Assembly: GCA_002269645.1 (NCBI GenBank)
Contig: NIVC01000033.1
Span: 175,335 to 239,334 of the forward strand
Length of the DNA: 64,000 nt
Origin: Macrostomum lignano
Lineage: Eukaryota
Reading direction: 5' to 3'
Shown: one piece after another, positions 14,875-62,202 of the stretch
Numbering within the stretch: position 1 is the first letter of the stretch
Layout of the letters: each line of letters starts with the position of its first letter
Translations under genes and position numbers: made by a program
Notes under the pieces: generated by a model
Seen by the model: only the letters and a program-made list of their open reading frames with translations
Told to the model about the DNA's origin: nothing
Databases searched by the model: none

Positions 14875-21859
<6,985 letters not shown>

Positions 21860-30060: not shown

Positions 30061-33000
30061 TTACAGCACGGCGCAGCTGGAGCGCGCCAAATGGGGACAG
30101 AAGCACTTTTGTTCGTTGCCATAGATCCACAGGGTGCCGTTCCGACCACGCCAGGTGTAATCTACCTGAGTCACGGGCACCGCGTGCAGCACCTGGCGCT
30201 GGCGCAGGATTCGAGCCTCGGTGCGTTTTGCCTGCTCGGCGTGATAATCCAGCATGGCCTGGGACAGCTGGCGCACCTCCTTGGAGAACTGCGTCAGCGG
30301 GAGGCCCTCCGCGGCCGAGTCGGTCTCGTGCAGCAGGACGCCGGTGACCTTCGACAGGCGACTCTCCAGCAGGTCCATGCGCTCGCACATCAGCTGGTTG
30401 GACGAGATGCTGTCGCTGGAATGATGACAGCGATTTGATTGAAGCGACGCAGGCGAAAGATTAAAGAAAAAATAGTGAACTAAGCTACATCCCCCGAAGA
30501 CCTAATCTAGAACAGTCTTAAACACACCAAGCTACATCTTCCGAAGCCCTAAGCTACAACAGTCTTAAACACACCAAGCTACATCTTCCGAAGACCTAAT
30601 CTAGAACAGTCTTAAACACACCAAGCTACATCTTCCGAAGCTCTAATCTAGAACAGTCTTAAACACACCAAGCTACATCTCCCGAAGCCCTAATCTAGAA
30701 CAGTCTTAAACACACCAAGCTACATCTCCCGAAACCCCGAAACCCTAAGCTATGACAATCTGCTCAGTTTACAGAAACTGAAAACTCACAATCGAACGGT
30801 GAGCTGCATGTAGCGCTGCAGTTTGCCCTTTCCCAGGCAGGCCTTGCAGTGCAGGTGGCCGACCCCGGTGCAGTAGGGGCAGCCGTACTCCCCGGTCTCG
30901 TTGCATTCGTGACACGCGTGCCGGCCGTACACCGCCTGCGACGGAAACTCCAGTCGGCGGCTGCCGGGCCCGGCGAAGTCGCCGCCGAAGCAGGTATCGC
31001 AGTCGGCGCGGCCGCTGCCGTGACAGGCGACGCACACCTGCCAGCCGCGCCCGTTGCAGGCGGAGCAGAGGATCACCCTGGCCGTGCCCGGGATGGCCAC
31101 GCGCTGCTCGGAGCTCTCGAACGGCCTGCCGCCCGGTCGGCACTCGATGTCCCACAGCGACTGTGGGAACTGCCGGCAGGCGTTCTTCAAGTTCTCCAGC
31201 GGCTCCACGGCCGAGTGAACGTTGCGGGTCTCAACGTACGTGTCTAGCGAGTACTGCGGACGGCGGGCAGGCTTGAGTTCTCAGACTCCGAAGGCACTCC
31301 TCAAAATCTCCCATAACTTTAAGAGCTTTAATCTCTTTGGTGATGAGGCATCGAAAGCAGAGAAATTTCACATTCGTCTTAATTCTCTACTGCAGAGACT
31401 CGTCCATCATCCATCATTTTTCAAGCCCTAAAGTGATGTCGTTCATGTGAAATTTCCCTTGAGAGGCGACGAGCTAGCCAAGTGGCAAAGTGACTGGTTG
31501 GCCGCATTACTCCCTCCCGAGTTGTTATAAAATTTACGACGAAAAATAAGCCCGGAAATTCCGAACAACCTTGCACCCCACTGAACTTGATGTATCTCTC
31601 TATTCTGGTCTGGTATTCCACCTGAACAAGTGCGGCTGTGCAACCCGCAGACTCCACCAACCTGGAAAGCCCTCCGCTGGCTGATATTCCGGAATTTAAT
31701 CTCTTTGATCTTGCCGCCGCACAGCAGGAAGTGCCTCCTGGCCCAGGCCTTCAAAGCGAGCCGGCACTCGTCTTCAGTGGCGGGGCTCAGACTGCAAGTT
31801 TAATTAAATGAGGGTTGAGCGCAGGTGAAAATTACTGTTAAACAAATTAATAACATATAGGCTAATTATAGATAGCATTAGTTACGGGTCCTACAGTAGA
31901 GGACTCAAATTAGATTTGCTTTTTTTCTGAACAACTGCGAGTTGACAAAAATAATCCCTCTGAAAAGTGACACCAATATTTCCTAAAAATACACAGTCTT
32001 CAGTCGCTAGCAACAAAGGGTGACAGAAAGCTACCCTTAAAAATAGCTGTAACTGCACACAGCTCGCCTAATGAGAGCAGGAGCGGCTCACAGTGAGGAA
32101 AAAACACGGAGCAGGAGACGGAACAGAGAGGGCTGGCCAACAACTGCCTACACGCCCTCACTGGGAGCCCCAGCTGTTGGTTGTCAAAGCAACACCGACA
32201 GAGTAGAGAGGGGAGATGCGAAAGCCTGAGCATGCACGGCCGCAGGAAATTGGCTTTGAGTTGCTCAAGAGAGTACAAATCCAGCGCACGCGCCTCTCGC
32301 ATGCCTTCATTCTCTATTCAAAAGTTCCCAACTCAGATCTCCGGTTCTCGCGCGCTTAAGGGAAGGACATTGCGTAGCAAACGGGTACTCTTCAAAATTG
32401 TGAAAAACATTTTCCCTAGTATAGTAGAGAGAGAAGTAGGGGACAGCGGAATCCAGTTCATTCCAGTTGACACGGTCGCGGTTTGAGGGGGTGGCGCGGC
32501 GACTGTGTTTATTACGACTGGGGGCGTGGCGTGCGGTCCTGGGGCTGGACGGGATTGATGGCCGCGGAATGGTGGATTTTTTCATTTTTTTGCTTGCGGA
32601 AAGCTCGGCCCGCCCACCACCCTCGGAGCGGAAGCAGCACTGTTTACCAAGCCGGCAGCCAAGAGTACTTATTCGGTACAGATCCCCGACCCCCGAGCAG
32701 TAGGCTGATGCAGCTAACTGCTTGCACAATATTGCGCAATGTCTCTATTGAGTCAGAGTAGTGCAAGAACTGCTACACGCTTTTAGAAACAACCAAAAAA
32801 CCAACCAACCAACCAACCAACCAACCAACCAACCAACCAACCAACCAACCAACCAACCAACCAACCAACCAACCAACCAACCAACCAACCAACCAACCAA
32901 CCAACCAACCAACCAACCAACCAACAACCAACCAACCAACCAACCAACCAACCAACCAACCAACCAACCAACCAACCAACCAACCAACCAACCAACCAAC

Positions 33001-33470
33001 CAACCAACCAACCAACCAACCAACCAACCAACCAACCAACCAACCAACCAACCAACCAACCAACCAACCAACCAACCAACCAACCAACCAACCAACCAAC
33101 CAACCAACCAACCAACCAACCAACCAACCAACCAACCAACCAACCAACCAACCAACCAACTAACCAACCAACCAACCAACCAACCAATTAGCTAACTAAA
33201 CAATAAAACAAGCAAAAAAACTAAAAAGGCAGCCAAGCATCACCTGCACAACGCGGCACCAAAGCAGGACTCATTAGCCGAGGTAGTGCTCATCAGGGAC
33301 TCCGCGCAGGACACCCGGTAGTCGGGCAGTCGCAGGTTGTTATCGAAGTCGCCGCAGCCGGAGTCGCAGTCGTCATCTTCCGCTTCGTCGTCTCGCTGGA
33401 AGGAGATTTTTCGTCTGCCTCGGCGTTCCACGATGCCGCAGTCGAGGTTGTCAAAGTTTGGCGACTCCAT
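30061..33470 (-). CDS. SSUH2: SSUH2 homolog (DnaJ-like CxxCxGxG zinc-finger repeats, C-terminal CaaX), 391 aa
   Basis: Exons 33244-33470, 31662-31791, 30790-31253, 30061-30415; phase-consistent, 1176 nt. Repeats [32 protein letters not shown]; SLWDI and [19 protein letters not shown] motifs; ends CAVL*. Confidence 0.88.
30480..30752. repeat. 47-bp tandem repeat, SSUH2 last intron
   Basis: AAGCTACATCTTCCGAAGCCCTAATCTAGAACAGTCTTAAACACACC, about 5-6 copies. Confidence 0.9.
32800..33186. repeat. (CCAA)n microsatellite
   Basis: Directly visible. Confidence 0.97.
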
Positions 33471-38165: not shown

Positions 38166-38350
38166 GCTCTCGAAATGTTGAGTCAGACAGACACACAAAG
38201 CACGCAAACTTGTCATTTTTGAGCTAAGCTCAAGTGACAGGGACATTGCTAGGCTATAAGATAAGAGTCTAGTCTCAATCTGCGGACTAACTTTTATCCA
38301 AATATCTTTGCCTAAACTTGTAGCCTTAACCCAGCGACAGCGACTCTGTT

Positions 38351-38365
38351 GTTGTCATTGGCAAC
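38351..38365. promoter_or_regulatory. RFX X-box-like motif GTTGTC-ATT-GGCAAC
   Basis: Fits the GTYNYC-N(0-3)-RGYAAC pattern; 277 nt upstream of the ATG at 38642. Confidence 0.45.
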
Positions 38366-38641
38366 CAAGTAAATCTGCGCAATTTTCCGCCAAACAGACA
38401 AATAGTGAGGCGCTCGAAAGAGCCACTCAATATATAGAACAGAGTGCTATATTCATATAGCATAAATCGCCATGGTTACGGGTTGTTAGAGACAACAAAA
38501 TTTGTGCGACTAAAATCTGAGCGTGCTTATATAAATACGAATCTTGTCGATAGTTAATGAGGTTTACAGGCTCAGACGGCTGTGCTCAGCGGATCTCAGA
38601 CTCATCTCATCAGTTAACAACCGCCCTCACCTGCAGACAGC

Positions 38642-41600
38642 ATGGGTTGCGAAGGCAGCAAATCCGCCGCGGTTGGAAGTCAAGGTGAGGCCGGATTAAC
38701 TGCCTGCATTGGATTCTGGGAAATGCTCAGACTCGATTCTACACAGGTTCCTCTATGCTTCCCCCTTTGGTTCTTTATCTGTCCCCAATCCCTCTAATGC
38801 CTCTATCCCTCTATCCACCAATCCCCAATCCCCAATCCCTCTATTCCAATCCCTCTGCCCCCAATCCCACCATCCACCAATCCCTATATCTCAAATCCCC
38901 CTATCACGAATCCCTCTATCCCAAATCCCTCTATCCCAAATCCCCCTATCCCCAATCCCTCTATCCACCAATCCCCAATCCCCAATCCCTCTATTCCAAT
39001 CCCTCTATCCCCAATCCCCCTATCCCCAATCCCTCTATCCACCAATCCCCAATCCCCAATCCCTCTATTCCAATCCCTCTATCCCCAATCCCCCTATCCC
39101 CAATCCCTCTATTCCAATCCCTCTATCCCCAATCCCCCTATCCCCAATCCCTCTATCCACCAATCCCCAATCCCCAATCCCCCTATCCCCAATCCCTCTA
39201 TCCCCAATCCCACTATCCACCAATCCCTCTATCCCAAATCCCTCTAATGCCTCTATCCCTCTATCCTGTCCGTGCTACCGCATCCCTCTCCTCTCTCGTG
39301 TCTTCTAGATCTCTCTTCATACTTTTTTAGCCTGCCTCCTGTTGCTATGCAACGCATTCTTTGTCAACCGCCCGCCGCTTCCAGCGCCCGCCCCAGCAGC
39401 CGGCAAGCGACAGGCAGCCGCGGCTGCCACTGAAAGCGGACGGACGGCCGGAGCGACGGCAGCGGCTGAGTCTTCGCGGCAACCGGATGATGCGGCCCCG
39501 GAGACTGAGGAGGTCGCACCTGTTGAGAAACAGGACGACCCTAATGGTAAAGCACATTGGGATTTGGCTGGATTGCTAATCTAGCCAATCACAGATATGA
39601 TACAATAGAATGGATTGCTAGTCTAGCCAATCACAGAGATGATAAAATAGAATGGATTGCTAGTCTAGCCAATCACAGAGATAATACAATAGAATGGATT
39701 GCTAGTCTATCCAATCACAGAGATAATACAATAGAATGGATTGCTAGTCTAGCCAATCACAGAGATAATACAATAGAATGGATTGCTAGTCAAGCCAATC
39801 ACAGAGATAATACAATAGAATGGATTGCTAGTCTAGCCAATCATAGAGATTATACAATAGAATGGATTGCTAGTCTATCCAATCACAGAGATTATACAAT
39901 AGAATGGATTGCTAGTCTATCCAATCACAGAGATGATACAATAGAATGGATTGCTAGTCTATCCAATCACAGAGATAATACAATAGAATGGATTGCTAGT
40001 CTAGCCAATCACAGAGATAATACAATAGAATGGATTGCTAGTCTAGCCAATCACAGAGATGATACAATAGAATAGATTGCTAGTCTAGCCAATCATAGAG
40101 ATTATACAATAGAATGGATTGCTGGTCTAGCCAATCATAGAGATTATACAATAGAATGGATTGCTAGTCTAGCCAATCACAGAGATGATACAATAGAATG
40201 GATTGCTAGTCTATCCAATCACAGAGATAATAAAATAGAATGGATTGCTAGTCTAGCCAATCACAGAGATAATACAATAGAATGGATTGCTAGTCTAGCC
40301 AATCATAGAGATTATACAATAGAATGGATTGCTAGTCTAGCCAATCACAGAGATGATACAAAAGAATGGATTGCTAGTCTAGCCAATCACAGAGATAATA
40401 CAATAGAATGGATTGCTAGTCTATCCAATCACAGAGATAATACAATAGAATGGATTGCTAGTCTAGCCAATCACAGAGATAATACAATAGAATGGATTGC
40501 TAGTCTAGCCAATCACAGAGATGATACAATAGAATAGATTGCTAGTCTAGCCAATCATAGAGATTATACAATAGAATGGATTGCTAGTCTAGCCAATCAT
40601 AGAAATTATACAATAGAATGGATTGCTAGTCTAGCCAATCACAGAGATGATACAATAGAATGGATTGCTAGTCTATCCAATCACAGAGATAATAAAATAG
40701 AATGGATTGCTAGTCTAGCCAATCACAGAGATAATACAATAGAATGGATTGCTAGTCTAGCCAATCATAGAGATTATACAATAGAATGGATTGCTAGTCT
40801 AGCCAATCACAGAGATGATACAAAAGAATGGATTGCTAGTCTATCCAATCACAGAGATTATACAATAGAATGGATTGCTAATCTAGCCAATCACAGAGAT
40901 TATATAATAGAATGGATTGCTAGTCTATCCAATCACAGAGATGATACAAAAGAATGGATCGCTAGTCTATCCAATCACAGAGATGATACAATAGAATGGA
41001 TTGCTAGTCTAGCCAATCACAGAGATGATACAATAGAATGGATTGCTAGTCTAGCCAATCACAGAGATTATACAATAGAATGGATTGCTAGTCTAGCCAA
41101 TCACAGAGATGATAATATTGAATGGATTGCTAGTCTATCCAATCACAGAGATAATAAAATAGAATGGATTGCTAGTCTAGCCAATCACAGAGATAATACA
41201 ATAGAATGGATTGCTAGTCTAGCCAATCATAGAGATTATACAATAGAATGGATTGCTAATCTAGCCAATCACAGAGATTATATAATAGAATGGATTGCTA
41301 GTCTATCCAATCACAGAGATGATACAAAAGAATGGATCGCTAGTCTATCCAATCACAGAGATGATACAATAGAATGGATTGCTAGTCTAGCCAATCACAG
41401 AGATGATACAATAGAATGGATTGCTAGTCTAGCCAATCACAGAGATTATACAATAGAATGGATTGCTAGTCTAGCCAATCACAGAGATGATAATATTGAA
41501 TGGATTGCTAGTCTATCCAATCACAGAGATAATAAAATAGAATGGATTGCTAGTCTAGCCAATCACAGAGATAATACAATAGAATGGATTGCTAGTCTAG

Positions 41601-43987
41601 CCAATCATAGAGATAATACAATAGAATGGATTGCTAGTCTAGCCAATCACAGAGATGATACAATAGAATAGATTGCTAGTCTAGCCAATCATAGAGATTA
41701 TACAATAGAATGGATTGCTAGTCTAGCCAATCATAGAGATGATACAATAGAATGGATTGCTAGTCTATCCAATCACAGAGATAATAAAATAGAATGGATT
41801 GCTAGTCTAGCCAATCACAGAGATGATACAATAGAATAGATTGCTAGTCTAGCCAATCATAGAGATTATACAATAGAATGGATTGCTAGTCTAGCCAATC
41901 ACAGAGATGATACAATAGAATGGATTGCTAGTCTATCCAATCACAGAGATAATAAAATAGAATGGATTGCTAGTCTAGCCAATCACAGAGATAATACAAT
42001 AGAATGGATTGCTAGTCTAGCCAATCACAGAGATGATACAATAGAATGGATTGCTAGTCTATCCAATCACAGAGATAATACAATAGAATGGATTGCTAGT
42101 CTAGCCAATCACAGAGATAATACAATAGAATGGATTGCTAGTCTAGCCAATCACAGAGATGATACAATAGAATAGATTGCTAGTCTAGCCAATCATAGAG
42201 ATTATACAATAGAATGGATTGCTAGTCTAGCCAATCATAGAGATGATACAATAGAATGGATTGCTAGTCTATCCAATCACAGAGATAATAAAATAGAATG
42301 GATTGCTAGTCTAGCCAATCACAGAGATAATACAATAGAATGGATTGCTAGTCTAGCCAATCATAGAGATTATACAATAGAATGGATTGCTAGTCTAGCC
42401 AATCACAGAGATGATACAATAGAATGGATTGCTAGTCTATCCAATCACAGAGATAATAAAATAGAATGGATTGCTAGTCTAGCCAATCACAGAGATAATA
42501 CAATAGAATGGATTGCTAGTCTAGCCAATCATAGAGATTATACAATAGAATGGATTGCTAGTCTAGCCAATCACAGAGATAATACAATAGAATGGATTGC
42601 TAGTCTAGCCAATCACAGAGATAATACAATAGAATGGATTGCTAGTCTAGCCAATCACAGAGATGATACAATAGAATAGATTGCTAGTCTAGCCAATCAT
42701 AGAGATTATACAATAGAATGGATTGCTAGTCTAGCCAATCATAGAGATGATACAATAGAATGGATTGCTAGTCTATCCAATCACAGAGATAATAAAATAG
42801 AATGGATTGCTAGTCTAGCCAATCACAGAGATGATACAATAGAATAGATTGCTAGTCTAGCCAATCATAGAGATTATACAATAGAATGGATTGCTAGTCT
42901 AGCCAATCACAGAGATGATACAATAGAATGGATTGCTAGTCTATCCAATCACAGAGATAATAAAATAGAATGGATTGCTAGTCTAGCCAATCACAGAGAT
43001 AATACAATAGAATGGATTGCTAGTCTAGCCAATCATAGAGATTATACAATAGAATGGATTGCTAGTCTAGCCAATCACAGAGATGATACAAAAGAATGGA
43101 TTGCTAGTCTATCCAATCACAGAGATTATACAATAGAATGGATTGCTAATCTAGCCAATCACAGAGATTATATAATAGAATGGATTGCTAGTCTATCCAA
43201 TCACAGAGATGATACAATAGAATGGATCGCTAGTCTATCCAATCACAGAGATGATACAATAGAATGGATTGCTAGTCTAGCCAATCACAGAGATGATACA
43301 ATAGAATGGATTGCTAATCTAGCCAATCACAGAGATTATACAATAGAATGGATTGCTAGTCTAGCCAATCACAGAGATGATACAATAGAATGGATTGCTA
43401 GTCTATCCAATCACAGAGATAATAAAATAGAATGGATTGCTAGTCTAGCCAATCACAGAGATAATACAATAGAATGGATTGCTAGTCTAGCCAATCATAG
43501 AGATTATACAATAGAATGGATTGCTAGTCTAGCCAATCACAGAGATGATACAATAGAATGGATTGCTAGTCTAGCTAATCACAGAGATAGTACAATAGAA
43601 TGGATCGCTAGTCTAGCCAATCACAGAGATAATACAATAGAATGGATTGCTAGTCTAGCCAATCACAGAGATAGTACAATAGAATGGATCGCTAGTCTAG
43701 CCAATCACAGAGATGATACAATAGAATGGATTGCTAGTCTAGCCAAGCAAGGACAAAGAACAGTCGAGCACACAATTCAATACTAAAATCGTCCACCTTC
43801 AGCCGCCGAAGCCGGCCAGCTGGCTGGGAGTCACGTGACTGACTCTGAAGCCGCGGCATCGAAAAGCACCGTCGAAGCCGACCCGGAGCCGGCAGAGCAG
43901 AGTAAACACTTTTTTATTTAAGTTCAAGAAGTTCTTTAGCAATTGTTTTAGTGCAGCAATCCTCAATACATTTCAGAATCTGATTGA
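38642..43987 (+). CDS. Unrecognised small Ala/Glu-rich disordered protein (~104 aa) with N-terminal MGCxxS acylation motif
   Basis: Exons 38642-38684 (MGCEGSKSAAVGSQ), 39385-39546, 43803-43901, 43977-43987 (KSD*). All three introns are phase 1 and GT-AG, total 315 nt. AATAAA at 44258-44263. The terminal exon is the least certain part. Confidence 0.65.
38780..39265. repeat. ATCCCCAATCCCTCT-type ~15-bp degenerate array, intron 1 of the MGCEGS gene
   Basis: Directly visible. Confidence 0.88.
39565..43746. repeat. 42-bp minisatellite, ~100 copies (AATAGAATGGATTGCTAGTCTAGCCAATCACAGAGATGATAC)
   Basis: Directly visible; gives the 14-aa period of ORF 39557-40075. Confidence 0.98.
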
Positions 43988-44315
43988 TGGAGGAACAGGC
44001 AATCTGACACTGACAGAAACTATATGATGGTTAAATCATTAAAGTTTGAAAATATATTCCAATATTCTGTTTTACTGTACATGTATTTAACAGCGCTCTC
44101 AATGATGCTTTCTCTATTTTTAAGCTAAATTTAAAACTGTTTGAATTAAAATTAAAATATATGATGAATACTACTGAAGACTACTTTTGAGTAGTTTGCA
44201 GCCAATTTCCCCCAAAATATTCGAAATCAAGCGGAAATATTTTTGTTTATGGAGTAGAATAAAAGTGCATAAATTTCTCACCTGAGCAGTTATGCGCGTT
44301 TCGGGGAGTGTTTTT

Positions 44316-46230
44316 AATCTCATCTCAATCTCATTTCATTCTCATCTCAATCTCATCTCAATCTCATCTCAATCTCATTTCATTCTCATCTCAATCTCAT
44401 CTCAATCTCATCTCAATCTCATCTCAATCTCATTTCATTCTCATCTCAATCTCATCTCAATCTCATTTCATTCTCATCTCAATCTCATCTCAATCTCATC
44501 TCAATCTCATTTCATTCTCATCTCAATCTCATCTCAATCTCATTTCATTCTCATCTCAATCTCATCTCAATCTCATCTCAATCTCATTTCATTCTCATCT
44601 CAATCTCATCTCAATCTCATCTCAATCTCATTTCATTATCATCTCAATCTCATCTCAATCTCATCTCAATCTCATCTCAATCTCTTCTCAATCTCATCTC
44701 AATCTCATCTCAATCTCATTTCATTCTCATCTCAATCTCATCTCAATCTCATCTCAATCTCATTTCATTCTCATCTCAATCTCATCTCAATCTCATCTCA
44801 ATCTCATTTCATTATCATCTCAATCTCATCTCAATCTCATCTCAATCTCATCTCAATCTCTTCTCAATCTCATCTCAATCTCATCTCAATCTCATTTCAT
44901 TCTCATCTCAATCTCATCTCAATCTCATCTCAATCTCATTTCATTCTCATCTCAATCTCATCTCAATCTCATCTCAATCTCATTTCATTCTCTTCTCAAT
45001 CTCATCTCAATCTCATCTCAATCTCATTTCATTCTCATCTCAATCTCATCTCAATCTCATCTCAATCTCATTTCATTCTCATCTCAATCTCATCTCAATC
45101 TCATCTCAATCTCATTTCATTCTCATCTCAATCTCATCTCAATCTCATCTCAATCTCATTTCATTCTCTTCTCAATCTCATCTCAATCTCATCTCAATCT
45201 CATTTCATTCTCATCTCAATCTCATCTCAATCTCATCTCAATCTCATTTCATTCTCATCTCAATCTCATCTCAATCTTATCTCAATCTCATTTCATTCTC
45301 ATCTCAATCTCATCTCAATCTCATCTCAATCTCATTTCATTCTCATCTCAATCTCATCTCAATCTCATCTCAATCTCATTTCATTCTCATCTCAATCTCA
45401 TCTCAATCTCATCTCAATCTCATTTCATTCTCATCTCAATCTCATCTCAATCTCATCTCAATCTCATTTCATTCTCATCTCAATCTCATCTCAATCTCAT
45501 CTCAATCTCATTTCATTCTTATCTCAATCTCATCTCAATCTCATTTCATTCTCATCTCAATCTCATCTCAATCTCATCTCAATCTCATTTCATTCTCATC
45601 TCAATCTCATCTCAATCTCATTTCATTCTCATCTCAATCTCATCTCAATCTCATCTCAATCTCATTTCATTCTCATCTCAATCTCATCTCAATCTCATCT
45701 CAATCTCATTTCATTATCATCTCAATCTCATCTCAATCTCATCTCAATCTCATCTCAATCTCTTCTCAATCTCATCTCAATCTCATCTCAATCTCATTTC
45801 ATTCTCATCTCAATCTCATCTCAATCTCATCTCAATCTCATTTCATTCTCATCTCAATCTCATCTCAATCTCATCTCAATCTCATTTCATTCTCATCTCA
45901 ATCTCATCTCAATCTCATCTCAATCTCATTTCATTCTCATCTCAATCTCATCTCAATCTCATCTCAATCTCATTTCATTCTCATCTCAATCTCATCTCAA
46001 TCTCATCTCAATCTCATTTCATTCTCATCTCAATCTCATCTCAATCTCATCTCAATCTCATTTCATTCTCATCTCAATCTCATCTCAATCTCATCTCAAT
46101 CTCATTTCATTCTCTTCTCAATCTCATCTCAGAGAATTCTCAATCTCATCTCAATCTCATTCTCACCGAATTCTCAATCTCATTCTCACCGAATTCTCAA
46201 TCTCATTCTCACAGAATTCTCAATCTCATT
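44316..46230. repeat. 10-bp ATCTCAATCT-type array with TTTCATTCTC variants (40-50-bp higher-order unit)
   Basis: Directly visible; source of the spurious 665-aa and 668-aa ORFs. Confidence 0.96.
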
Positions 46231-50410: not shown

Positions 50411-53400
50411 ATGTTGCCAACGGTCGAACCTCCATCGACACCATGCAGCCGAGCCTGCCGCCTGTTTGGCGAATTCTCCAACACCACCACCATGCACGGT
50501 GTCAGGCGCGCTGCCGGCGCCCGCACGGTGAACGCCCGGCTCTGCTGGTCTCTGCTGACCGTGGCCTGCATCCTGGGCTTCCTGGTGCAGTTCAGCATCC
50601 TGCTTGATCAGTACAAGCAGTACCCGGTGTCCGTGAAGCGTCTGTCTCAGTCGGTGGCCTTCCACTTTCCCGATCTGACGTTCTGCGTGGCCGGCAACTT
50701 CTTGGAGCGGCCAGAGCTGGAGCAGAGCAAACAGCTGCTGGCTCTGGAGGCCAACCTTGAGAACCTGCAGATGGAGAACGAGAACCGAGTGCCGGACCTG
50801 TTCAAGCTGGTGTCCCGGATACGGTGGGATGGGCAGGGGTTCGAGTTGGACATTTGAGTTCAGAATTCGAGACTGGGATTGGGATTAGAGTTTCGGATTG
50901 GGATTCGAGTTTCGGATTGGGATTCGAGTTTCGGATGGGGATTCGAGACAAGGGCTTGCTTTGCTACAGAAATGAAATGAGGAAAGTGTTGTCAAAGCTT
51001 TGTTCGGATAAGTCTCGATGAAAATGCCTTCGCGCATTGAATCCATCCCACAGATTTTTGACTAAGCCGCTTAAACAACATCCTTCGAATCACTGCATGA
51101 CATTTGAGCAGATTAAAGAGCTTTGATAAGGTTAGCCGCACACATGTTAATTCCCTTTAGGATTTGTTTTTAGAGGAAAAAGCCTGTGCAGGAATTCGGC
51201 CTTCAGATTTTCGAAAAATGGTTGCTATTTGAGAGAAATTCTCGGCATCACGTGGCTGAAAACTGCTCACGTTTGGCGTGCAGCGTTTGCCAAAACAGCG
51301 TTCTGAAGCACTTGTGCCTCAGGGTTAGGGTGGGGTGACCACCTTCACCTCTTTTAGCAATATAATTGCTGTTCTATCTATGCGTCCTCTTTCCTCCCTG
51401 CTTATTTGCCTCTTATCTGTGCTTATCTGCCTATCATCTGTGCTTATCTGCCTCTCCTCTGTGCTTATCTGCCTCTCATCTGTGCTTATCTGCCTCTCCT
51501 CTGTGCTTATCTGCCTCTCATCTGTGCTTATCTGCCTCTCATCTGTGCTTATCTGCCTCTTCTCTGTGCTTATCTGCCTCTCCTCTGTGCTTATTTGCCT
51601 CTCCTCTGTGCTTATCTGCCTCTCCTCTGTGCTTATCTGCCTTTCTTCTGTGCTTATCTGCCTCTTCTCTGTGCTTATCTGCCTCTTCTCTGTGCTTATC
51701 TGCCTCTTCTCTGTGCTTATCTGCCTCTTCTCTGTGCTTATCTGCCTCTTCTCTGTGCTTATCTGCCTCTTCTCTGTGCTTATCTGCCTCTCCTCTGTGC
51801 TTATCTGCCTCTCCTTTGTGCTTATCTGCCTCTCTTCTGTGTGCTCATCAGCCTCCCCTCTGTGTACTCATCAGCCTCCCCTCTGTGTGCTTATCTGCCT
51901 CTCCCCTGTGCTTATCTGCCATTCCTCTATCCTTATCTGCCTCTTCTCTGTGTGCTTATCTGCCATTCCTCTACCCTTATCTGCCTCTTCTCTCTGTGCT
52001 TATTTGCCTCTCCTCTATGTGCTTATTTGCCTCTCCTCTCTGTACTTATCTGCCTCTCCTCTGTGCTTATCTGCCTCTTCTCTGTGTGCTTATCTGCCAT
52101 TCCTCTCTCCTTATCTGGCTCTTCTCTCTGTGCTTATTTGCCTCTCCTCTATGTGCTTATTTGCCTCTCCTCTCTGTACTTATTTGCCTCTCCTCTGTGC
52201 TTATTTGCCTCTTCTATCTGTGCTTATCTGCCTCTCATCTGTGCTTATCTGCCTCTTCTCTGTGCTTATCTGCCTCTCCTCTGTGCTTATTTGCCTCTCC
52301 TCTGTGCTTATCTGCCTCTCCTCTGTGCTTATCTGCCTTTCTTCTGTGCTTATCTGCCTCTTCTCTGTGCTTATCTGCCTCTTCTCTGTGCTTATCTGCC
52401 TCTTCTCTGTGCTTATCTGCCTCTTCTCTGTGCTTATCTGCCTCTTCTCTGTGCTTATCTGCCTCTTCTCTGTGCTTATCTGCCTCTCCTCTGTGCTTAT
52501 CTGCCTCTCCTTTGTGCTTATCTGCCTCTCTTCTGTGTGCTCATCAGCCTCCCCTCTGTGTACTCATCAGCCTCCCCTCTGTGTGCTTATCTGCCTCTCC
52601 CCTGTGCTTATCTGCCATTCCTCTATCCTTATCTGCCTCTTCTCTGTGTGCTTATCTGCCATTCCTCTACCCTTATCTGCCTCTTCTCTCTGTGCTTATT
52701 TGCCTCTCCTCTATGTGCTTATTTGCCTCTCCTCTCTGTACTTATCTGCCTCTCCTCTGTGCTTATCTGCCTCTTCTCTGTGTGCTTATCTGCCATTCCT
52801 CTCTCCTTATCTGGCTCTTCTCTCTGTGCTTATTTGCCTCTCCTCTATGTGCTTATTTGCCTCTCCTCTCTGTACTTATTTGCCTCTCCTCTGTGCTTAT
52901 TTGCCTCTTCTATCTGTGCTTATCTGCCTCTCCTCTGTGCTTATCTGCCTCTTCTCTGTGTGCTTATCTGCCATTCCTCTCTCCTTATCTGGCTCTTCTC
53001 TCTGTGCTTATTTGCCTCTCCTCTCTGTGCTTATCTGCCATTCCTCTATTTATCTTCTTCTCCTCTCTTTGCTTATCTGCTTCTCCTCTAGGCCTCTCAC
53101 CCTTTGTGCCTCTCTATATTCTCATTCGTGCCTCTCCCGCCTCTCCTCTCTGCCACTTTCTCCATCAAAAACTGTTTCAAATTCAGTTTTCTTTCTCTGA
53201 TTTACAGAGCAATTTGTTCTCGATTTATGGAACATTTTCAAAAGCACCGTTCTCTATTAAAAGGCTTTAAAGAGAACTTCTGCTTGCCTGTACGAAAATG
53301 GTTTCTAGCGAATTCAAAGGAAAATTGGCTAAATAATAGGTATGAGTAGGAGAAATCAGGGAACAACATTTGGTATTTCTGCTACTTTTCTCAACAAAAA

Positions 53401-56400
53401 TGTTTGTTAGCTACAATAAGCCCTAGTTTGAGGAAATTCCATTTCTTTTATGGGATATTAATGGACTTTATATGTACAACAGATTTCTTGGCACAACGAA
53501 ACCTCCTCAAAAATGCGCAGGTACTGCAGCGTGAACGAGAAGGATTTCTACCTGCCTCTAGAGGACATGCTGGTGGACTGCGTGATTCATGGAGTGCCGT
53601 GCAACGCCAGCATGTTCACCCAGCACAGCAGCAGCCAGTACCGTGGCTGCTACACGTTTCACAGCGAAAGAATTGAGAGAAGCGACAGAAGCGAATCCAG
53701 CGAAAAAATGGTGCGAATTTTCCCGTGGATATGGGGATGGGGAGACTCATCAGTTTTCAGCTTTGTTGTTCGTCAGCAGTTCAGTATGAATACACAATGG
53801 GGGACGTAGCCCACGTGGTCCCGCGCGGCGCTCTGATGTGCCAGCGGCCCAGGCTCGATTCCGAGTGTAGTCAAATAAATTTGAGGCCAAATTGGAATCT
53901 CGGCTTGGCTCTCTGCTCGTGCAATTAATACCTTTGTGGGCCAACCCCCAAGGCACAGCGAAGTGTACATGCCTAACGACAAACAACGGCCCTGTACACT
54001 TCTGTCAGTGTATGCCTGTACGTATGACTGTGTACGTATCTGCGCGCTTGTGTGCCTGCTCGGGGGAGTCGGTGAAATGGGCTTCGCCACTCGTGACAAT
54101 TGATCATTATCTACCTCTGAAACTGTATCTATAACTATGCATTGCCTCACCTTACGGACTTCCCAAGTCCAAATCAAGCAAGTGCGTGTTTTGTCTATGG
54201 CAAAGCCTCACCCAGGACTGTGCGAAGGCAAATCGATATACCCTTCCAACTTCTTTCCGAAGTCCGTTTAGGAAGCGTAACAGAATTTCAGGTGTTGCCG
54301 CTCTCCAATAATAACTTTTAAAGTTTCGTAGCTTTCAAGACAGTCAAGCTTTTTAACGGTTTTTTGTTTAAAAAAGCTTGATCGGTTCCACTTTGAGTTT
54401 GAAATCCGAACCAATGCAGTGTTGCGTCCCTTCAAGACTCTATGTACTTGTATATGGTGCTTCTTATTCATTGTCAGCCTAAGCGATATTTAGGACCTTC
54501 AACAAAAAGGCATCATAAAGCGATTGTTGATTTAGTAATTGGACTAGCGAACTCAGCCCCCCGTTGGTGCCAGTTAAAATTCCGATCACATTTCGATTGC
54601 CCCAAACAGATCGACCTGTTCTCCTACGGAATGCGTCTGGTGCTGTTCACGCAGAATGAGCACAGCAGCTCCTCCGCCGATGCAGAAACCGTAGCGAGCA
54701 ACCCGACGCTGCTGCCCGATGGCCGGTCGGATGGCGAGCGGCTGGACCGAGTTGAGGGCATCAAGACCATCATCCATCCGCACACGACCTACCCGGTGCC
54801 GGAGTTCCGGGGAGTCACCATGGCCTCGGCCAAGGCCTACCAGTTCAGCGTGCGCATGCTGGAGACCCGCAGCCTGTCGACCCCGGCCAAGCCGTGCCAG
54901 ACGGACCAGGCGGCGGGCTCGGTGCGCGTGCTGGACAGGACCAACGGCCAGCTGACGGAGTTCGCCTACGACCAGGAGGTCTGCCTGATGCGCTCCTATC
55001 AGACTTTTCTCTACTCGCAGTGCGGCTGCATCTCGTACGCTTATCCGGTTTTTGAGCAGTACCAGCTGCGGGACCAGTGCCACTACCTGTCAGCCGAATG
55101 GCTCAAATACCTGGCTACGACGCACTACGTGAGCTGGAATGAGACAGCGCGAAAGGTAGCTCATACGAATAAAAATTAGTTAAAGCGTCTTCCAGTTTCA
55201 TAAGTCTGAGTACTAAATTTTGAAAAACTATACCCTGGACGATCGAGAGAGACGAGCATATAGGAGAGTTCATTCAGAAACAATTAGAAAAAGTTTCCAA
55301 TATATTGTATCAATATCTAGCAGGACAGCAGACAAATAATCTAGATCAATGGAGAAGTCTTTATCCCGCGCCAACAAGATGCGGCAGAATTTTTGAGAGC
55401 ACTTTTTTTGGGAGGGGGCTGTAGCCTAGGGGTTAGAGCGTCGGACTCTCGACTTGAAGGTCGGGGGTTCGATTCCCAATCCCACTGGAACAATTTGTGC
55501 CCTTGAGCAAGACACTTAACTCTGCATTGCTTCAGTTCACCCAGCTGTAAAATGGGTGCCAGCATTAGCTGGGGTAATTGAGGGCGTGCGTGGCGACTTC
55601 CCTCTCCCAGTCCTTGGACTGAACAGCCGTACGCAGCCTTCAGATGCGGCGCGCAATAGCTGCGGCTGAGCTGTCGGTTGCACATCTGACCCAATTGGGG
55701 CAGGTGTAATCAATTATTATCATACCCTGCTCAAGGAGGGTGCCATCATGCCCGGTGGCAGACATCGCGATCGATCGAATGTCACCCCAATTCGCTCCTA
55801 GGCGGTCGACCGCCTGATCGATAGGAGCCTCTGTCACGATCGCTACTTTAACAGTCCGGAAGCGGCCGCAACCACTGAAGCTCTGAACAGCTGCGCGCAT
55901 CCGTGCGTCAGGCAGTCCTACACCAATGTTGTGTCCATGGCCAAGTGGCCCACCGCGGCTGCCTATCCGGTTCTGATGTCCCGGCTGAACATCATGTTCG
56001 ACCAGGCCAATCTGACTGGCAGGTGCGTTTCTACTTATTTCTTACAGTAAGGAGTCGAACTACTTAACGGTATTTCAAAGTATTTTCTGTTAAGCAATTT
56101 GCTTAAACAAAGCACCTCTTTGCACCTTCTCCGCTAAAGCCCGCTAGTATAGTTCACACAGTCAACTTCATTTGGTTTTATGAACTTACTTGACTGGAAT
56201 ATTCGACGCTTAAATGTACCTTCAGTTTTACCTTCATTCACCATCTACTCTTCTTTTCATCGCCGTCTTTCTCAGCCCTCCTTTTCCCAGCCCTTCTCGG
56301 CTCTCCTTTCCCTTCGCTTCGTCTTCATTATCTAACAAGAGTATCCGCTGAGCACACTGACTCAGACTCCATCAAACTCCTACAGATTCACCGTGCTCAA

Positions 56401-56845
56401 CGGATTCGCCAACAATCGGAGTCTGCCGATGAGCGAGCTCGAGCAGCGAGTCACGAAAATCGACGTCCTGGCCGAGAGCTACCTGGCCGATCTGGAGGTC
56501 GAGGAGCTGGCCTACACCATGGAGAAGCTTTTGTCGGATCTTGGCGGAAACCTCGGCCTGTGGATCGGTGTCAGCGTGCTGACAGTGCTGGAGATTCTCG
56601 ACCTGCTGCTGAGCTACATCCGGCTCGCTGTGGGTCGGCAGTTCGCCAGAAGATGCGGATGCCGTTCCCGTGGCTGCGGTGAATCCTCCAACCGGCGTTC
56701 GACTGTTTTGATGGAGCTCAGCGCTGGAAGCTACCGACAGAGACGGGCATCGGTCTATCCCAGCTGCTACCTGCACCAGGACTCGGCTGGGTCAAACAAT
56801 AATGGAGGAAGTGCTCGGTGGCAGCCGGAGACGCACTATTTCTGA
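50411..56845 (+). CDS. DEG/ENaC (amiloride-sensitive, FaNaC/ASIC-like) sodium channel subunit, ~609 aa (636 aa with the putative upstream exon 48003-48051)
   Basis: Exons 50411(or 50379)-50823, 53521-53710, 54610-55155, 55802-56022, 56386-56845; phase-consistent. FSNTTTMHG (HG motif), TM1, FPDLTFC, Cys-rich extracellular domain, TM2 LLSDLGGNLGLWIGVSVLTVLEI. The 50823/53521 junction is less certain. Confidence 0.88.
51400..53090. repeat. 21-bp pyrimidine-rich array TGTGCTTATCTGCCTCTTCTC with a ~696-bp internal duplication
   Basis: Directly visible; the variant GTGCTCATCAGCC occurs at 51841 and 52537. Confidence 0.95.
53799..54080 (+). mobile_element. tRNA-headed SINE-like element, family 2
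   Basis: GGGGGACGTAGCCCACGTGG (A-box-like) and GGCTCGATTCC (B-box-like, 53852-53862). The body GGCCAACCCCCAAGGCACAG..GTACATGCCT recurs at ~18812 and ~58059. Confidence 0.55.
55414..55723 (+). mobile_element. tRNA-derived CORE-type SINE with LINE-derived tail, in a DEG/ENaC intron
   Basis: A box TAGCCTAGGGG and B box GGTTCGATTCC (55466-55476). The central TGTGCCCTTGAGCAAGACACTTAAC..CAGTTCACCCAGCTGTAAAATGGG resembles the MIR CORE domain. The tail matches 49047-49171 (reverse complement). Confidence 0.8.
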
Positions 56846-57541: not shown

Positions 57542-60500
57542 ATGCCGCATGCTAAGGTTAATCCAGCAGCAAATAAATTTAACGAGAAGGACGCCGAGAT
57601 CTTGTCGAGCACCTCCATCGACAAACAAGATGATGTGAGTACTCGATGGGAGAGACAGTTTTAGGCATAGGGTAGAGAGCAGGCTAAAGCATAATACGCT
57701 TTATCAGCAACTTTACATGCACGGTTTTACCTATTTCTTTAAAATCCAGCGACTCAAAGTGTTCAGCCGGAGGTTTGAAGAATACCCCGATGCGAGCGTT
57801 GTGGACGTCTTCAAGAGCGGCATGCGGGTCTCGGCGTCCAGGCCCTGTCTGGGTACCAGGTTCGATATCAACTCGCCATTCACCTGGATGTCTTATCAGG
57901 AGGTAAAGTTCACTATGAACTTGTAATTTAGTGGGATGTGCTTGCGCCCTGCTGAATGCCCTGCTGAAGAGTTCAGTTAAGACATAAACTCATCATAATT
58001 TTGGGCCTTAATTTCGATTTCGGAAGCAGAACAGCTCAGTCCGCCCCCCCCCCCACGAGGGCCAACCCTCCAAGGCACAGAACTAGAGTACACGCCTGAG
58101 AAAGTCAGGACCGCTGCGCATCCTGTGTGAGCGTGTTTGAGTACGTGCCTGCGTACAGTATTGGCGCGTCTCTGTGCTCAGGAGCCAGCGGAATGGGCGG
58201 CATTGCCTCAGCGCTGGTTGTGGGAGGATATCACCGAAGGCGTTGCGCCAGGGTGCCAACAGCCCTCCTGTACATGTATACCACGAGTGTTTTGATTTTT
58301 TTATATTAAAAAGTTGACCGGTAACGGGCCGACTGTCTGTCACCACAGTTCATGATGGGTTGGTAATTCCTGGAATATCTAAGATCCCACTGAAGAGTAG
58401 CAAAGAAAAGAATGTGAAGCAAATCTCTTTTAGTGTGCTCAATATGTTGTGAATAAGGTTTCTTGTTCGTGTCACTGTCTCCTGGTTGACGTCACTGTCT
58501 CCTGGTTGACGTCACTGACTCTTGGTGGATGTCACTGTCTTTTGGTGGGCGGCACTATCTCTTGGTGGGAGTCCCTGTCTCTTGGTGGACGTCACTGTCT
58601 CTTGGTGGACGTCACTGTCTCTTGGTGGACGTCATTGTATGTTGGTGGACGTCACTGTCTCTTGGTGGACGTCACTGTCTCTTGGTGGACGTCATTGTAT
58701 GTTGGTGGGCGTCACTGTCTCTTGATGGACGTCACTGTCTCTTGGTGGACGTCACTGTCTCTTGGTGGACGTCACTGTCTCTTGGTGGACGTCACTGTCT
58801 CTTGGTGGACGTCACTGTCTCTTGGTGGACGTCACTGTCTCTTGGTGGACGTCACTGTCTCTTGGTGGACGTCACTGTTTCTTGGTGGACGTCACTGTCT
58901 CTTGGTGGACGTCACTGTCTCTTGGTGGACGTCACTGTCTCTTGGTGGACGTCACTGTCTCTTGGTGGACGTCACTGTCTCTTGGTGGACGTCACTGTCT
59001 CTTGGTGGACGTCACTGTCTCTTGGTAGGCTTTTGGTGTGTGCTGTACACTCAGATGCCCTGTCGAAGAGGTGGCTGAAATGGAGCTCTTGTTATTCAAC
59101 GAGCCTGTAGCGGGTGATTCGGGGGGGGGGCGGCCCCCGGTAGGTTGACTGTCGTAATAACTAGCAGCCCATTGACTTCTGACAGACTTATAACACAGAC
59201 TTATAACACATAACTTGAAAAAAAACTTACAGGTGTTCACCGAAGCGCTCAACATCGGTGCATTCCTGGCCGCCGTTCTCAAACTGCCGCCGGAAAGTTT
59301 TGTGGGAATTTACACCAAGAACCGCGCCGAGTGGGTGATACTGGAGCTCGGCTGCTACCTGTACTGCCTCACACCAGTGCCGCTGTACGACACCTTGGGC
59401 CCGGAGGCCACGGACCACATTCTGATGCAGACTCGCATTAGTGTCATCCTGTGTGAGACTCCCCAGCACGTGACCAATCTGCTGCGCTTAAAGAACTCCG
59501 CCCAGCTCCTGCACATCATCCAGCTGAGCGGCCGGATACCAAAGGTCAACGAGATCAAGCAGCAGGCCTGGGGCTGGCAGGAGGCGCTGAAGGCAGGGCG
59601 GGAAAATCCAGTCGAGCAGCGCCAGCAGCCCAACAGGAAAAGCCTGGCTCTGCTGTGCTACACCAGCGGAACTACCAGTGAGTCAAGGGAAAATGAATCC
59701 CAGAGGCAAACGTATCTAAAATCAAGTCTCTTCAAGTTGTTTGACAGTCTTTGAAGCCTTACATGTAGTTTTTTGTCGCGAGTCTTATTCCATTAAGTAT
59801 CTGATGACTGCATGGCGTGTAGGCAGAAATCAGCAAATCATTTTTTCTTCTAAAATTGCTACAATCGAGAAAAATCCCGGAACTCAGAAGCTGATTTCAG
59901 CAGGTGTAGCATTCTCCTGTTTGATTTAATGCCCCTCCGGAGACAGAAATAGGCGATACGCTTGTAGCTCGTAGGTTAATGGAGTCTACCGGCAAAATCG
60001 AAAACCACAGGCTTGGGAAGCAGCAGTCAAGGTTTATTATGGCAAAAGCACAAAATGCTGAAAGACAGATGTGGGCAGACAAGGACAGTATGAAGGGAAG
60101 AATCGCATTCTTACATTCTTTAATATTTTCCCTTTGCTTTGCACCCAGGCCTCCCGAAGGGCGTTCAAATTACGCACGGCAATTTAATAGCCGAATCGCT
60201 GGCCATGACGGACCTTTTGATAACTCACGGCAAGCAGGTGAGAGAACAAGTTTGCTAAAAGTTTGAGGTTGCTGACAGTTAATTGATTCGATTGACTGTC
60301 GACAATATTTTATCTGGCTGAGTCTAATTAAGCATGCAGAAAGTGTCGACAGCTTCAAACCCGGAACTTTTACAGTACGTGTCCACCGCCAGCTGCGATG
60401 ACGTCTACCTGAGCTACCTGCCCCTGGCTCACATCTTCGAGCGAATTATGCACGTTTTATGCTTCATGCATGGCATGAGAATCGGATTCTACCGTGGCGA

Positions 60501-62202
60501 CATTCTCACCCTAGTCGACGACATGAAGGAGCTCAAGCCGACCATTTTCTGCACTGTGCCTCGGCTGCTGAATCGGATTTACGACAAGACCTTGGCCCAG
60601 GCGAACTCCAACTGTCTTAGGGCTGCCATCTTCCGCATGGCGCTTAGGCGCAAAACTAATGAAGTTAATCGGCGAGTCATTCGGAAGAATTCCATCTGGG
60701 ACTCGCTGGTGTTTAGCAAGATTCAGGTGAGAGCCCCCTGCTATCAATGTTGATGCATAGGTCATGACTCATGATCCCGTACTTTAACTACTAGATGGAC
60801 CACTTAGGCGAATTATGTTGACGTACTAATGACACCTGCCCCCCTCTGCGTACGCCACTGTGCTATTGATTCAGCCATAATGTGTATACATAAGCCAGCA
60901 ACATTGAAAATTAAAAAAGGCAGCTTTAGGAAGGACAATGAAAAATTGTGGAAAGACGCGATTAGCGCGGTGAAAAATCGGCTATTCAGGTTATGGTAGT
61001 GGTCATTAGTAATGTGAGGCGTTCCTCCAGCAAGTCTCAAATCAGCTTCTTTATAATTTATATTTTGGGCTATTCAAAAAGGATCATAAAGTCCAAAATA
61101 GAGCAGCAAACTTATTTTGAACCCATTGAGCAGGCCTCCACCGGCAACCGCATCCGGCTAGTCATTGTGGGCTCCGCCCCTCTAGCCGAAGAGGTGATGC
61201 GCTTCTCAAGGGCGGCCTTCGGCTGCCCGGTGGTGGAAGGCTACGGCCAGACGGAGACCACAGGTGGTTCCACCGTCACGCTACCAGGCAATCCCCAGAC
61301 GGGCAACGTCGGAATGCCGCTGTTCAACAACGTCGTCCAGCTGCAGGACGTCCCGGAAATGGGCTACTACGCTAAAGACGGCTCGGGCGAAGTCTGCATC
61401 AAAGGCTTAAACGTCATGCCTGGCTACTTCCATATGGAAGCGGAGACGGCCAATATCATGAACTCCGACGGCTGGATGCACACGGGTGACATTGGTCAAT
61501 GGTCCAGCGACGGTTTTCTGAAGATCATCGACCGAAAGAAGCACATTTTCAAGTTGTCCCAGGGCGAGTACGTTGCTCCAGAAAAGATTGAACAGATTTA
61601 CAGCACCAACGTCTACGTGTATCAGGTGTTCGTGCACGGAGACAGCCTGGAGAATTTCATTCTGGCCGCGGTTGTGCCCAACCCGGAGGCTGTGATGGCT
61701 TGGGCAAAGAAGCGGCGCAAACCGGAAAATTTGAAAGACCTGTGCAACGATTTGGAACTAAAAACGGAGATCCTGCAGAGTATGCAAGCCACGGGGAAGG
61801 CTAATGATCTCAAGTCTTTCGAGCAGGTACGGCGACATCGTATGTAAAGTTTTACTGCGCAATTGGTTTTGTGTAAAGGCTAATCATATGCGGTAATGGA
61901 GGCTCAGTGATATATCGAATCGAAGTGTACTACATGTGTCTCGCTAAGGCCCTTTACAACCAATTCCAACTTCAATCCATTCCAACGCCAATTTACATGT
62001 AGGTTTTAGAAGGCATTCAGCAGCTAGTATGAGGCTATATCGCCTACCATCCTGTCACTTGCAGGTGCGGGACATACACCTGCACCACGAGCCGTTTAGC
62101 GTTGAGAACGGCCTCCTGACGCCAACGTTCAAGGCTATGCGCAACGAGTTGCGTCGATTATTTGGCGAAACGTTCACAAAGATGTACCGCGACCACCGAT
62201 AG
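57542..62202 (+). CDS. ACSL: Long-chain fatty acyl-CoA synthetase (ACSL1/5/6 family), 653 aa
   Basis: Exons 57542-57634, 57750-57902, 59233-59677, 60149-60237, 60376-60726, 61134-61826, 62065-62202; 1962 nt, phase-consistent. Motifs YTSGTTSLPKG, SYLPLAHIFER, EGYGQTE, GWMHTGDIG, IIDRKKHIFKLSQGEYVAPEKIE, ENGLLTPTFK. Confidence 0.94.
58470..59026. repeat. 20-bp array CTTGGTGGACGTCACTGTCT, ACSL intron 2
   Basis: Directly visible. Confidence 0.96.

Follow-up and report, generated by a model that had tools for sequence, protein, structure and literature searches.

N-myristoyltransferase acts on a Gly at position 2 after removal of the initiator Met, and its consensus has an uncharged, non-bulky residue at position 3, a Ser, Thr, Ala, Gly, Cys or Asn at position 6, and no Pro at position 7. 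Palmitoylation by a membrane DHHC enzyme classically takes place on a Cys beside the myristoylated Gly, an arrangement found in the Met-Gly-Cys proteins, among them Galpha-i/o, the Src-family kinases Lyn, Yes and Hck, BAALC and RP2. In BASP1, MARCKS and GAP43, function depends on a basic effector region to which acidic lipids and calmodulin bind. Here we describe a gene of Macrostomum lignano (a free-living flatworm) whose product begins MGCEGSK and is compared with both groups. It lies in a 64,000-nucleotide (nt) stretch of DNA, referred to as the window (NIVC01000033.1:175335-239334; assembly GCA_002269645.1, Mlig_3_7), and all positions are those of the window unless a different copy is named. 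The four-exon, 104-residue gene is real, transcribed and restricted to this species. The best reading of its product is a dual-acylated, membrane-tethered, acidic and disordered protein, a reading in which we infer translation, lipidation and membrane location from sequence, and to which we give even chances.

Gly2 is proposed as the myristoylation site because the sequence G2-C3-E4-G5-S6-K7 fits the N-myristoyltransferase consensus. The N-terminus also conforms to the PROSITE PS00008-type pattern, G-{EDRKHPFYW}-x(2)-[STAGCN]-{P}, with both Cys3 and Lys7 present, and the MGCEGSK segment encoded by exon 1 is identical in all three genomic copies of the gene despite three synonymous changes. A preliminary description of this DNA had stated that MGCxxS directs myristoylation plus palmitoylation. 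The motif part of that statement stands, in that it fits the consensus, includes a palmitoylatable Cys3 and is kept in three copies, whereas acylation itself is a prediction from the motif. In the mechanism that we propose, Met1 would be removed and Gly2 would be N-myristoylated co-translationally, and a membrane would then be the site at which the adjacent Cys3 is S-palmitoylated, in the manner of the Met-Gly-Cys proteins. This would anchor the N-terminus stably on the cytosolic side of the plasma membrane or of another palmitoylating compartment, from which the Ala-rich segment, followed by the highly acidic tail, would extend into the cytosol and serve as a tethered polyanion or scaffold. 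In M. lignano embryos, mRNA injection has been used to assay N-terminal lipidation tags, the myristoyl-plus-palmitoyl Lyn tag among them (PMC12633465), and therefore both the machinery and the assay exist and a direct test is practical.

A different outcome, and one that we regard as rather improbable, is that the protein is made but is neither lipidated nor membrane-bound, and is simply a soluble, acidic and disordered protein. The case for acylation is one of sequence motif alone, and the combination of Glu4 beside Cys3 with no nearby basic residues is atypical of the best-studied Met-Gly-Cys proteins, both of which would suit a soluble product. However, G2, S6 and K7, the positions most important for N-myristoyltransferase, all fit, the Cys adjoining the putative myristoyl-Gly is in the classic palmitoylation context noted above, and the N-terminal exon is without amino acid change between copies; these points favour the acylated form.

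Comparison with the described proteins shows that the likeness is partial. The sequence M-G-C-x-x-S-K is shared with the Met-Gly-Cys proteins, in which Gly2 carries myristate, Cys3 carries palmitate, and Ser6 and Lys7 are favoured, and BAALC is likewise small and largely disordered. There is, however, no sequence relationship past residue 7, and the 104-residue protein is without a kinase, GTPase or other domain. With BASP1, GAP43 and MARCKS it has in common a small to medium size, disorder, a composition rich in Ala, Glu and Pro, and an N-terminus that is lipid-anchored (by prediction in this case), and tethering to the inner leaflet would likely be similar. It differs in lacking a polybasic effector domain for binding calmodulin and phosphatidylinositol bisphosphate, in a predicted anchor of myristate plus palmitate rather than myristate plus a basic patch (BASP1, MARCKS) or Cys-Cys palmitate (GAP43), and, relative to GAP43, in having a single Cys and no IQ motif. 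The protein has no match at E<=10 to the Pfam families BASP1 (PF05466), Neuromodulin_N, Neuromodulin or MARCKS, and no phmmer match to these proteins either. The comparison with BASP1, GAP43 and MARCKS made in the preliminary description is thus overstated: the general look and possible tethering survive, but homology does not and the effector domain is missing, such that on sequence grounds the protein is analogous to them, neither homologous nor a member of their group. BAALC and HASPB, a hydrophilic acylated surface protein of Leishmania, are the closer analogues. HASPB is also lineage-specific, hydrophilic, acidic, repeat-like or disordered, with an N-terminal myristoyl-plus-palmitoyl signal as its only recognisable feature. 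It comes from an unrelated organism and is unrelated in sequence, and it contains tandem amino acid repeats and is exported to the outer leaflet, whereas nothing suggests export here.

The predicted protein has a mass of 10.1 kDa and an isoelectric point (pI) of 4.31, is 27% Ala, and contains no aromatic residue and only one Cys, at position 3. There are 19 acidic residues against 8 basic ones, five of which are Lys. Residues 1-26 contain K7, K22, R23 and E4 for a net charge of +2 without forming a basic cluster, and residues 53-104 have a net charge of -11. An AlphaFold2 model computed without an alignment has low confidence (predicted local distance difference test score 61.7, predicted template modelling score 0.17) and includes a single Ala-rich helix at residues 23-44, which indicates a protein that would be almost entirely disordered. 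These properties agree with the acidic, Ala/Glu-rich and largely disordered character first ascribed to it. In a word-indexed search at E<=0.01 the 104-residue query matches two protein clusters, each of them from M. lignano. Raising the threshold to E<=10 in a word-indexed search of 5.8 billion sequences brings in no homologue from any other species, and an exhaustive phmmer search of 1.84 billion representatives likewise yields only M. lignano copies. At E<=10 neither Pfam (hmmscan) nor the PDB sequences give a match, and Rfam gives none over the whole window. The protein is an orphan at the level of sequence, and the proposed restriction to this lineage holds even at the permissive threshold.

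The gene is organized as four coding exons on the forward strand. Coding exon 1 (38642-38684; 43 nt) consists of MGCEGSKSAAVGSQ plus 1 nt and is followed by intron 1 (38685-39384; 700 nt). The Ala-rich coding exon 2 (39385-39546; 162 nt) encodes the sole predicted helix, and beyond it is intron 2 (39547-43802; 4256 nt), nearly all of which is a 42-nt minisatellite. Coding exon 3 (43803-43901; 99 nt) encodes the acidic C-terminal part, and after intron 3 (43902-43976; 75 nt) the coding part of exon 4 (43977-43987) supplies the last 2 nt of a Lys codon, Ser, Asp and the TGA stop (43985-43987). The rebuilt coding sequence (CDS) is therefore 43+162+99+11 = 315 nt including TGA, with a product of 104 amino acids (aa). 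All three introns are GT-AG and in phase 1, the donors being G|GTGAGG, G|GTAAAG and A|GTAAAC, and the acceptors, which have good polypyrimidine tracts, being cttccag|C, ccttcag|C and atttcag|A, for introns 1 to 3 respectively. The start codon is in the context acagcATGg, with A at -3 and G at +4. The 3' untranslated region (UTR; 43988-44263) ends with the polyadenylation signal AATAAA at 44258-44263, which is the first such signal after the stop codon and is 271 nt downstream of it. The four-exon, phase-1 structure given earlier for this locus is reproduced at every coordinate and, in translation, residue for residue, and the AATAAA that it placed after the stop is present. Exon 2 is, as was also remarked, the only coding exon to appear in the list of open reading frames (ORFs), where with a 60-aa cut-off it is seen as an 80-aa ORF at 39342-39584.

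The gene had been called unrecognised, which proves not to be the case. The protein is identical, residue for residue, to GenBank PAA93085.1 (hypothetical protein BOX15_Mlig029592g2; UniProt A0A1I8ICH8), and the gene as annotated covers 5346 bp, corresponding to 38642-43987 of the window. The contig NIVC01000033.1 matches 28642-53987 without a difference over 25,346 bases. The GenBank annotation of Mlig_3_7 was built only from transcript assemblies, using RNA-seq-guided StringTie/TACO and de novo assembly; evidence from trans-splicing and poly(A) served to cut the transcripts, and TransDecoder to filter them (PMC5730564). Because the annotated CDS is identical to our model and the annotation is transcript-derived, it is implied that spliced transcripts with these junctions were assembled. 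What was known already does not go beyond the designation of a hypothetical protein, and the acylation signal is a plausible prediction from its sequence. A second M. lignano entry, UniProt A0A1I8F701, is named 'Testis expressed 54' (TEX54) and is an 82-aa, frameshifted product from an older assembly; it agrees with the 104-aa protein over residues 1-51, and none of the three Mlig_3_7 copies uses the frame in which its last 31 residues are read. No TEX54 from another species is matched at E<=10 in the search of 5.8 billion proteins or at E<=0.001 in the exhaustive search, the literature on TEX54 contains only gene-list mentions, and no search supports the name on A0A1I8F701.

The M. lignano genome is neopolyploid and comprises three subgenomes (PMC10733133), and the assembly contains two further syntenic copies of the gene, L003 (NIVC01001461.1) and L002 (NIVC01003645.1), whose CDSs diverge from that of the window by ~1.3% and ~3.6%, respectively. 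The splice sites, reading frame, stop codon, TATA box and AATAAA are all kept in both. One of these copies bears on the idea that the exons are part of a longer known gene, which we consider scarcely credible. The GenBank model of the L003 copy (paralogue g1; PAA67714.1; L003 10001-11426) is 131 aa long and begins at an upstream ATG, equivalent to 38557 in the window. We reject this model as an artefact; it needs a GT..CC junction located 4 nt beyond the canonical acceptor, and use of the canonical junction at the same locus yields the 104-aa MGC protein. An in-frame TAA also lies 27 nt upstream of the MGC start codon, the gene is bounded by a conserved TATA box upstream and the conserved AATAAA downstream, and on this strand, from 33.5 to 44 kb, no further gene is annotated.

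The ATG at 38557-38559 is in a different frame from the MGC start codon and has a weak context (ttaATGa). It is the only nearby upstream ATG and, were it part of the transcript, would open a 58-codon out-of-frame upstream ORF in the spliced mRNA. It begins ~22 nt past the end of the putative TATA box, and so may lie at or before the start of the transcript. The TATA box itself (TATATAAA; 38528-38535, forward strand) is read directly from the sequence ~107 nt 5' of the start codon and is presumed to be functional.

Comparison of the copies provides evidence that the ORF is coding. The only indel in the CDS is an in-frame 9-nt deletion in exon 2 of L002. The window and L002 differ by 5 synonymous and 6 nonsynonymous substitutions (dN/dS 0.39), with exon 1 contributing three synonymous and no nonsynonymous changes, and L003 and L002 differ by 6 synonymous and 5 nonsynonymous substitutions (dN/dS 0.27). 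Between the window and L002 the nonsynonymous divergence of 0.026 is below the intron divergence of 0.074 (Fisher p=0.016), and the synonymous divergence of 0.066 matches that of the introns. The MGC frame also has the highest synonymous share among the forward-strand frames. The frame is thus kept and nonsynonymous change is suppressed, as in a coding gene, with moderate support from 11 substitutions. Joined and read in antisense, the exons likewise give a stop-free frame, with a better codon score than the sense frame, although an antisense reading is rejected in that the introns are GT-AG on the forward strand only and the substitutions would be 1 synonymous to 10 nonsynonymous.

Several observations weigh against a translated and dual-acylated protein. 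MGC followed by S6 is a short motif that is expected by chance in some proteins and was noticed post hoc, and its conservation is seen only across very recent duplicates, as the gene has no orthologue in other species. Neither Mlig029592 nor Mlig033986 was found in the full-text literature or in the supplements of several M. lignano papers. The selection test rests on 11 substitutions, and the excess of synonymous change has P=0.03-0.11. Mononucleotide shuffles of the CDS remain stop-free in frame in 8.4% of trials, and the exons are 58-69% G+C, and therefore the open frame alone is weakly significant; the gene model is supported instead by its splice structure, by an annotation based on transcripts and by comparison of the copies. 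The codon usage is also unlike that of the neighbours. The G+C content at third codon positions is 0.59, compared to 0.68-0.91 in ten neighbouring conserved exons, the synonymous codon log2 odds relative to local preference are -12, and the gene favours AAA, GAA, ACT and TCT where its neighbours use codons ending in G or C. Such usage could be that of a young gene, or could reflect weak translational selection.

Many of the same observations would be expected if a genuine transcript carried an ORF that had arisen only as a by-product of G+C richness, either in a young or non-coding transcript or as a barely selected ORF that arose de novo, in which case the acylation motif is fortuitous. Open shuffles, an open antisense frame in the joined exons, the unusual codons, the lack of a homologue, domain or confident fold, and a selection signal that is statistically thin are all consistent with this. 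Less easily accommodated are a frame that crosses three splice junctions in three diverged copies with a sole indel that is a multiple of three, a nonsynonymous rate about one third of the intron rate alongside a synonymous rate equal to it, and the strong Kozak-type start context, with only a weak upstream ATG, together with the TransDecoder coding call in the published annotation. We regard the by-product explanation as unlikely, though deserving of serious consideration, and hold it quite probable that the ORF is coding. A coding function is likely but, given the codon usage and composition, not yet secure.

A separate question is posed by the DNA upstream of the gene. The 300 bp preceding the start codon (38342-38641, forward strand), comprising the promoter and 5' UTR region, are conserved between copies far above the introns, with 0.014 substitutions per site between the window and L002 (~98.6% conserved) versus 0.074 in the pooled introns (Fisher p=0.0003); in the same comparison the divergence of the 3' UTR is 0.056 and that of the CDS is 0.036. 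The promoter constraint is real and mildly interesting, and the conservation of the 300 bp suggests a compact, constrained promoter or gene conversion. This region contains an X-box-like palindrome, ATCGCCATGGTTAC (38466-38479), with two mismatches to GTNRCCNNRGYAAC, a good X-box having the form GTNRCC N0-3 RGYAAC. The site, which all copies retain, is centred on CCATGG ~165 nt upstream of the ATG, and one of its RFX half-sites is perfect. The preliminary description had raised the possibility that the protein is ciliary on account of this site, and a ciliary membrane protein under RFX/X-box control would gain some appeal from the half-site, from its retention, and from the fact that several small myristoylated proteins (cystin, NPHP3 and RP2) are ciliary. 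However, there are 35 matches of this quality in the window, compared to 57.5 +/- 7.9 in shuffled sequences, which places the site at chance level and short of a good X-box, and its retention is uninformative because the entire 300-bp promoter is conserved along with it. The link to cilia accordingly falls away, and we judge the ciliary reading to be very improbable. We note that a better X-box match, GTTGCCATGGAAAC, is present elsewhere in the window at 4300-4313; it is palindromic, has a single mismatch and is located inside an acidic ORF region (4044-4865, reverse strand).

The gene is set among satellites, as was originally described, with minisatellites in intron 1 (a C-rich 15/74-nt array at 38778-39266), in intron 2, and downstream of the gene, where a 44-nt array occupies 44316-46165. 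The array in intron 2 (39569-43746) has 99.5 copies of a 42-nt unit with 94% matches. Intron 2 is only 518 nt in L003, with ~10 units (L003 10746-11185), and 281 nt in L002, with ~4.5 units (L002 10804-10994). The gene thus spans 5346 bp in the window but 1341 and 1247 bp in the other two copies, because the number of intron-2 units differs. The unit number of the 42-nt array differs 10- to 20-fold between these recent duplicates, and each unit contains AGCCAATCA, a CCAAT-box-like motif within an imperfect palindrome. The window as a whole is extraordinarily rich in minisatellites, with 55 rows in the Tandem Repeats Finder (TRF) output and >30 distinct arrays whose periods range from 4 to 144 nt; the arrays mostly each have their own unit, and many are within introns of conserved genes.

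Among the other features of the window, an intact 570-aa piggyBac-type transposase ORF is present at 7661-9373 (reverse strand), with a Pfam DDE_Tnp_1_7 match (E=5.9e-61) and a zinc finger, and it is flanked by arrays of one 21-nt unit (GGGCGGATTAAGGATCCTCAA) at 6764-7222 and 9617-9907. Exons encoding an adenylate kinase domain (Pfam ADK) are located at 16122-21859 (forward strand), followed by a Cys-rich 391-aa gene at 30061-33470 (reverse strand) with weak DnaJ-CXXCXGXG/GRXCR-like matches. To the right of the MGC gene are a DEG/ENaC channel gene (ASC; 50411-56845, forward strand) and a long-chain acyl-CoA-synthetase-like gene (AMP-binding; 59215-61847, forward strand).

The gene has little importance beyond the species, and the main value of the analysis is corrective: the gene is already annotated, the motif behind the link to cilia is at chance level, and coding, though likely, is not yet secure. 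At its most ambitious, the interpretation is of a Macrostomum-specific and possibly de novo-born gene, with a promoter more constrained than its CDS, whose dual-lipidated, acidic and disordered product would give order to a domain of the plasma membrane, or to a raft-like or ciliary one, and be functionally convergent with BASP1, BAALC or HASPB; this we offer as speculation that is unlikely to be right. If the acylation is true, the protein would provide a native and very short myristoyl-plus-palmitoyl membrane tag for M. lignano transgenesis, and the toolkit would also gain a compact, well-conserved promoter. It would then be another case of a lineage-restricted, lipid-anchored disordered protein.

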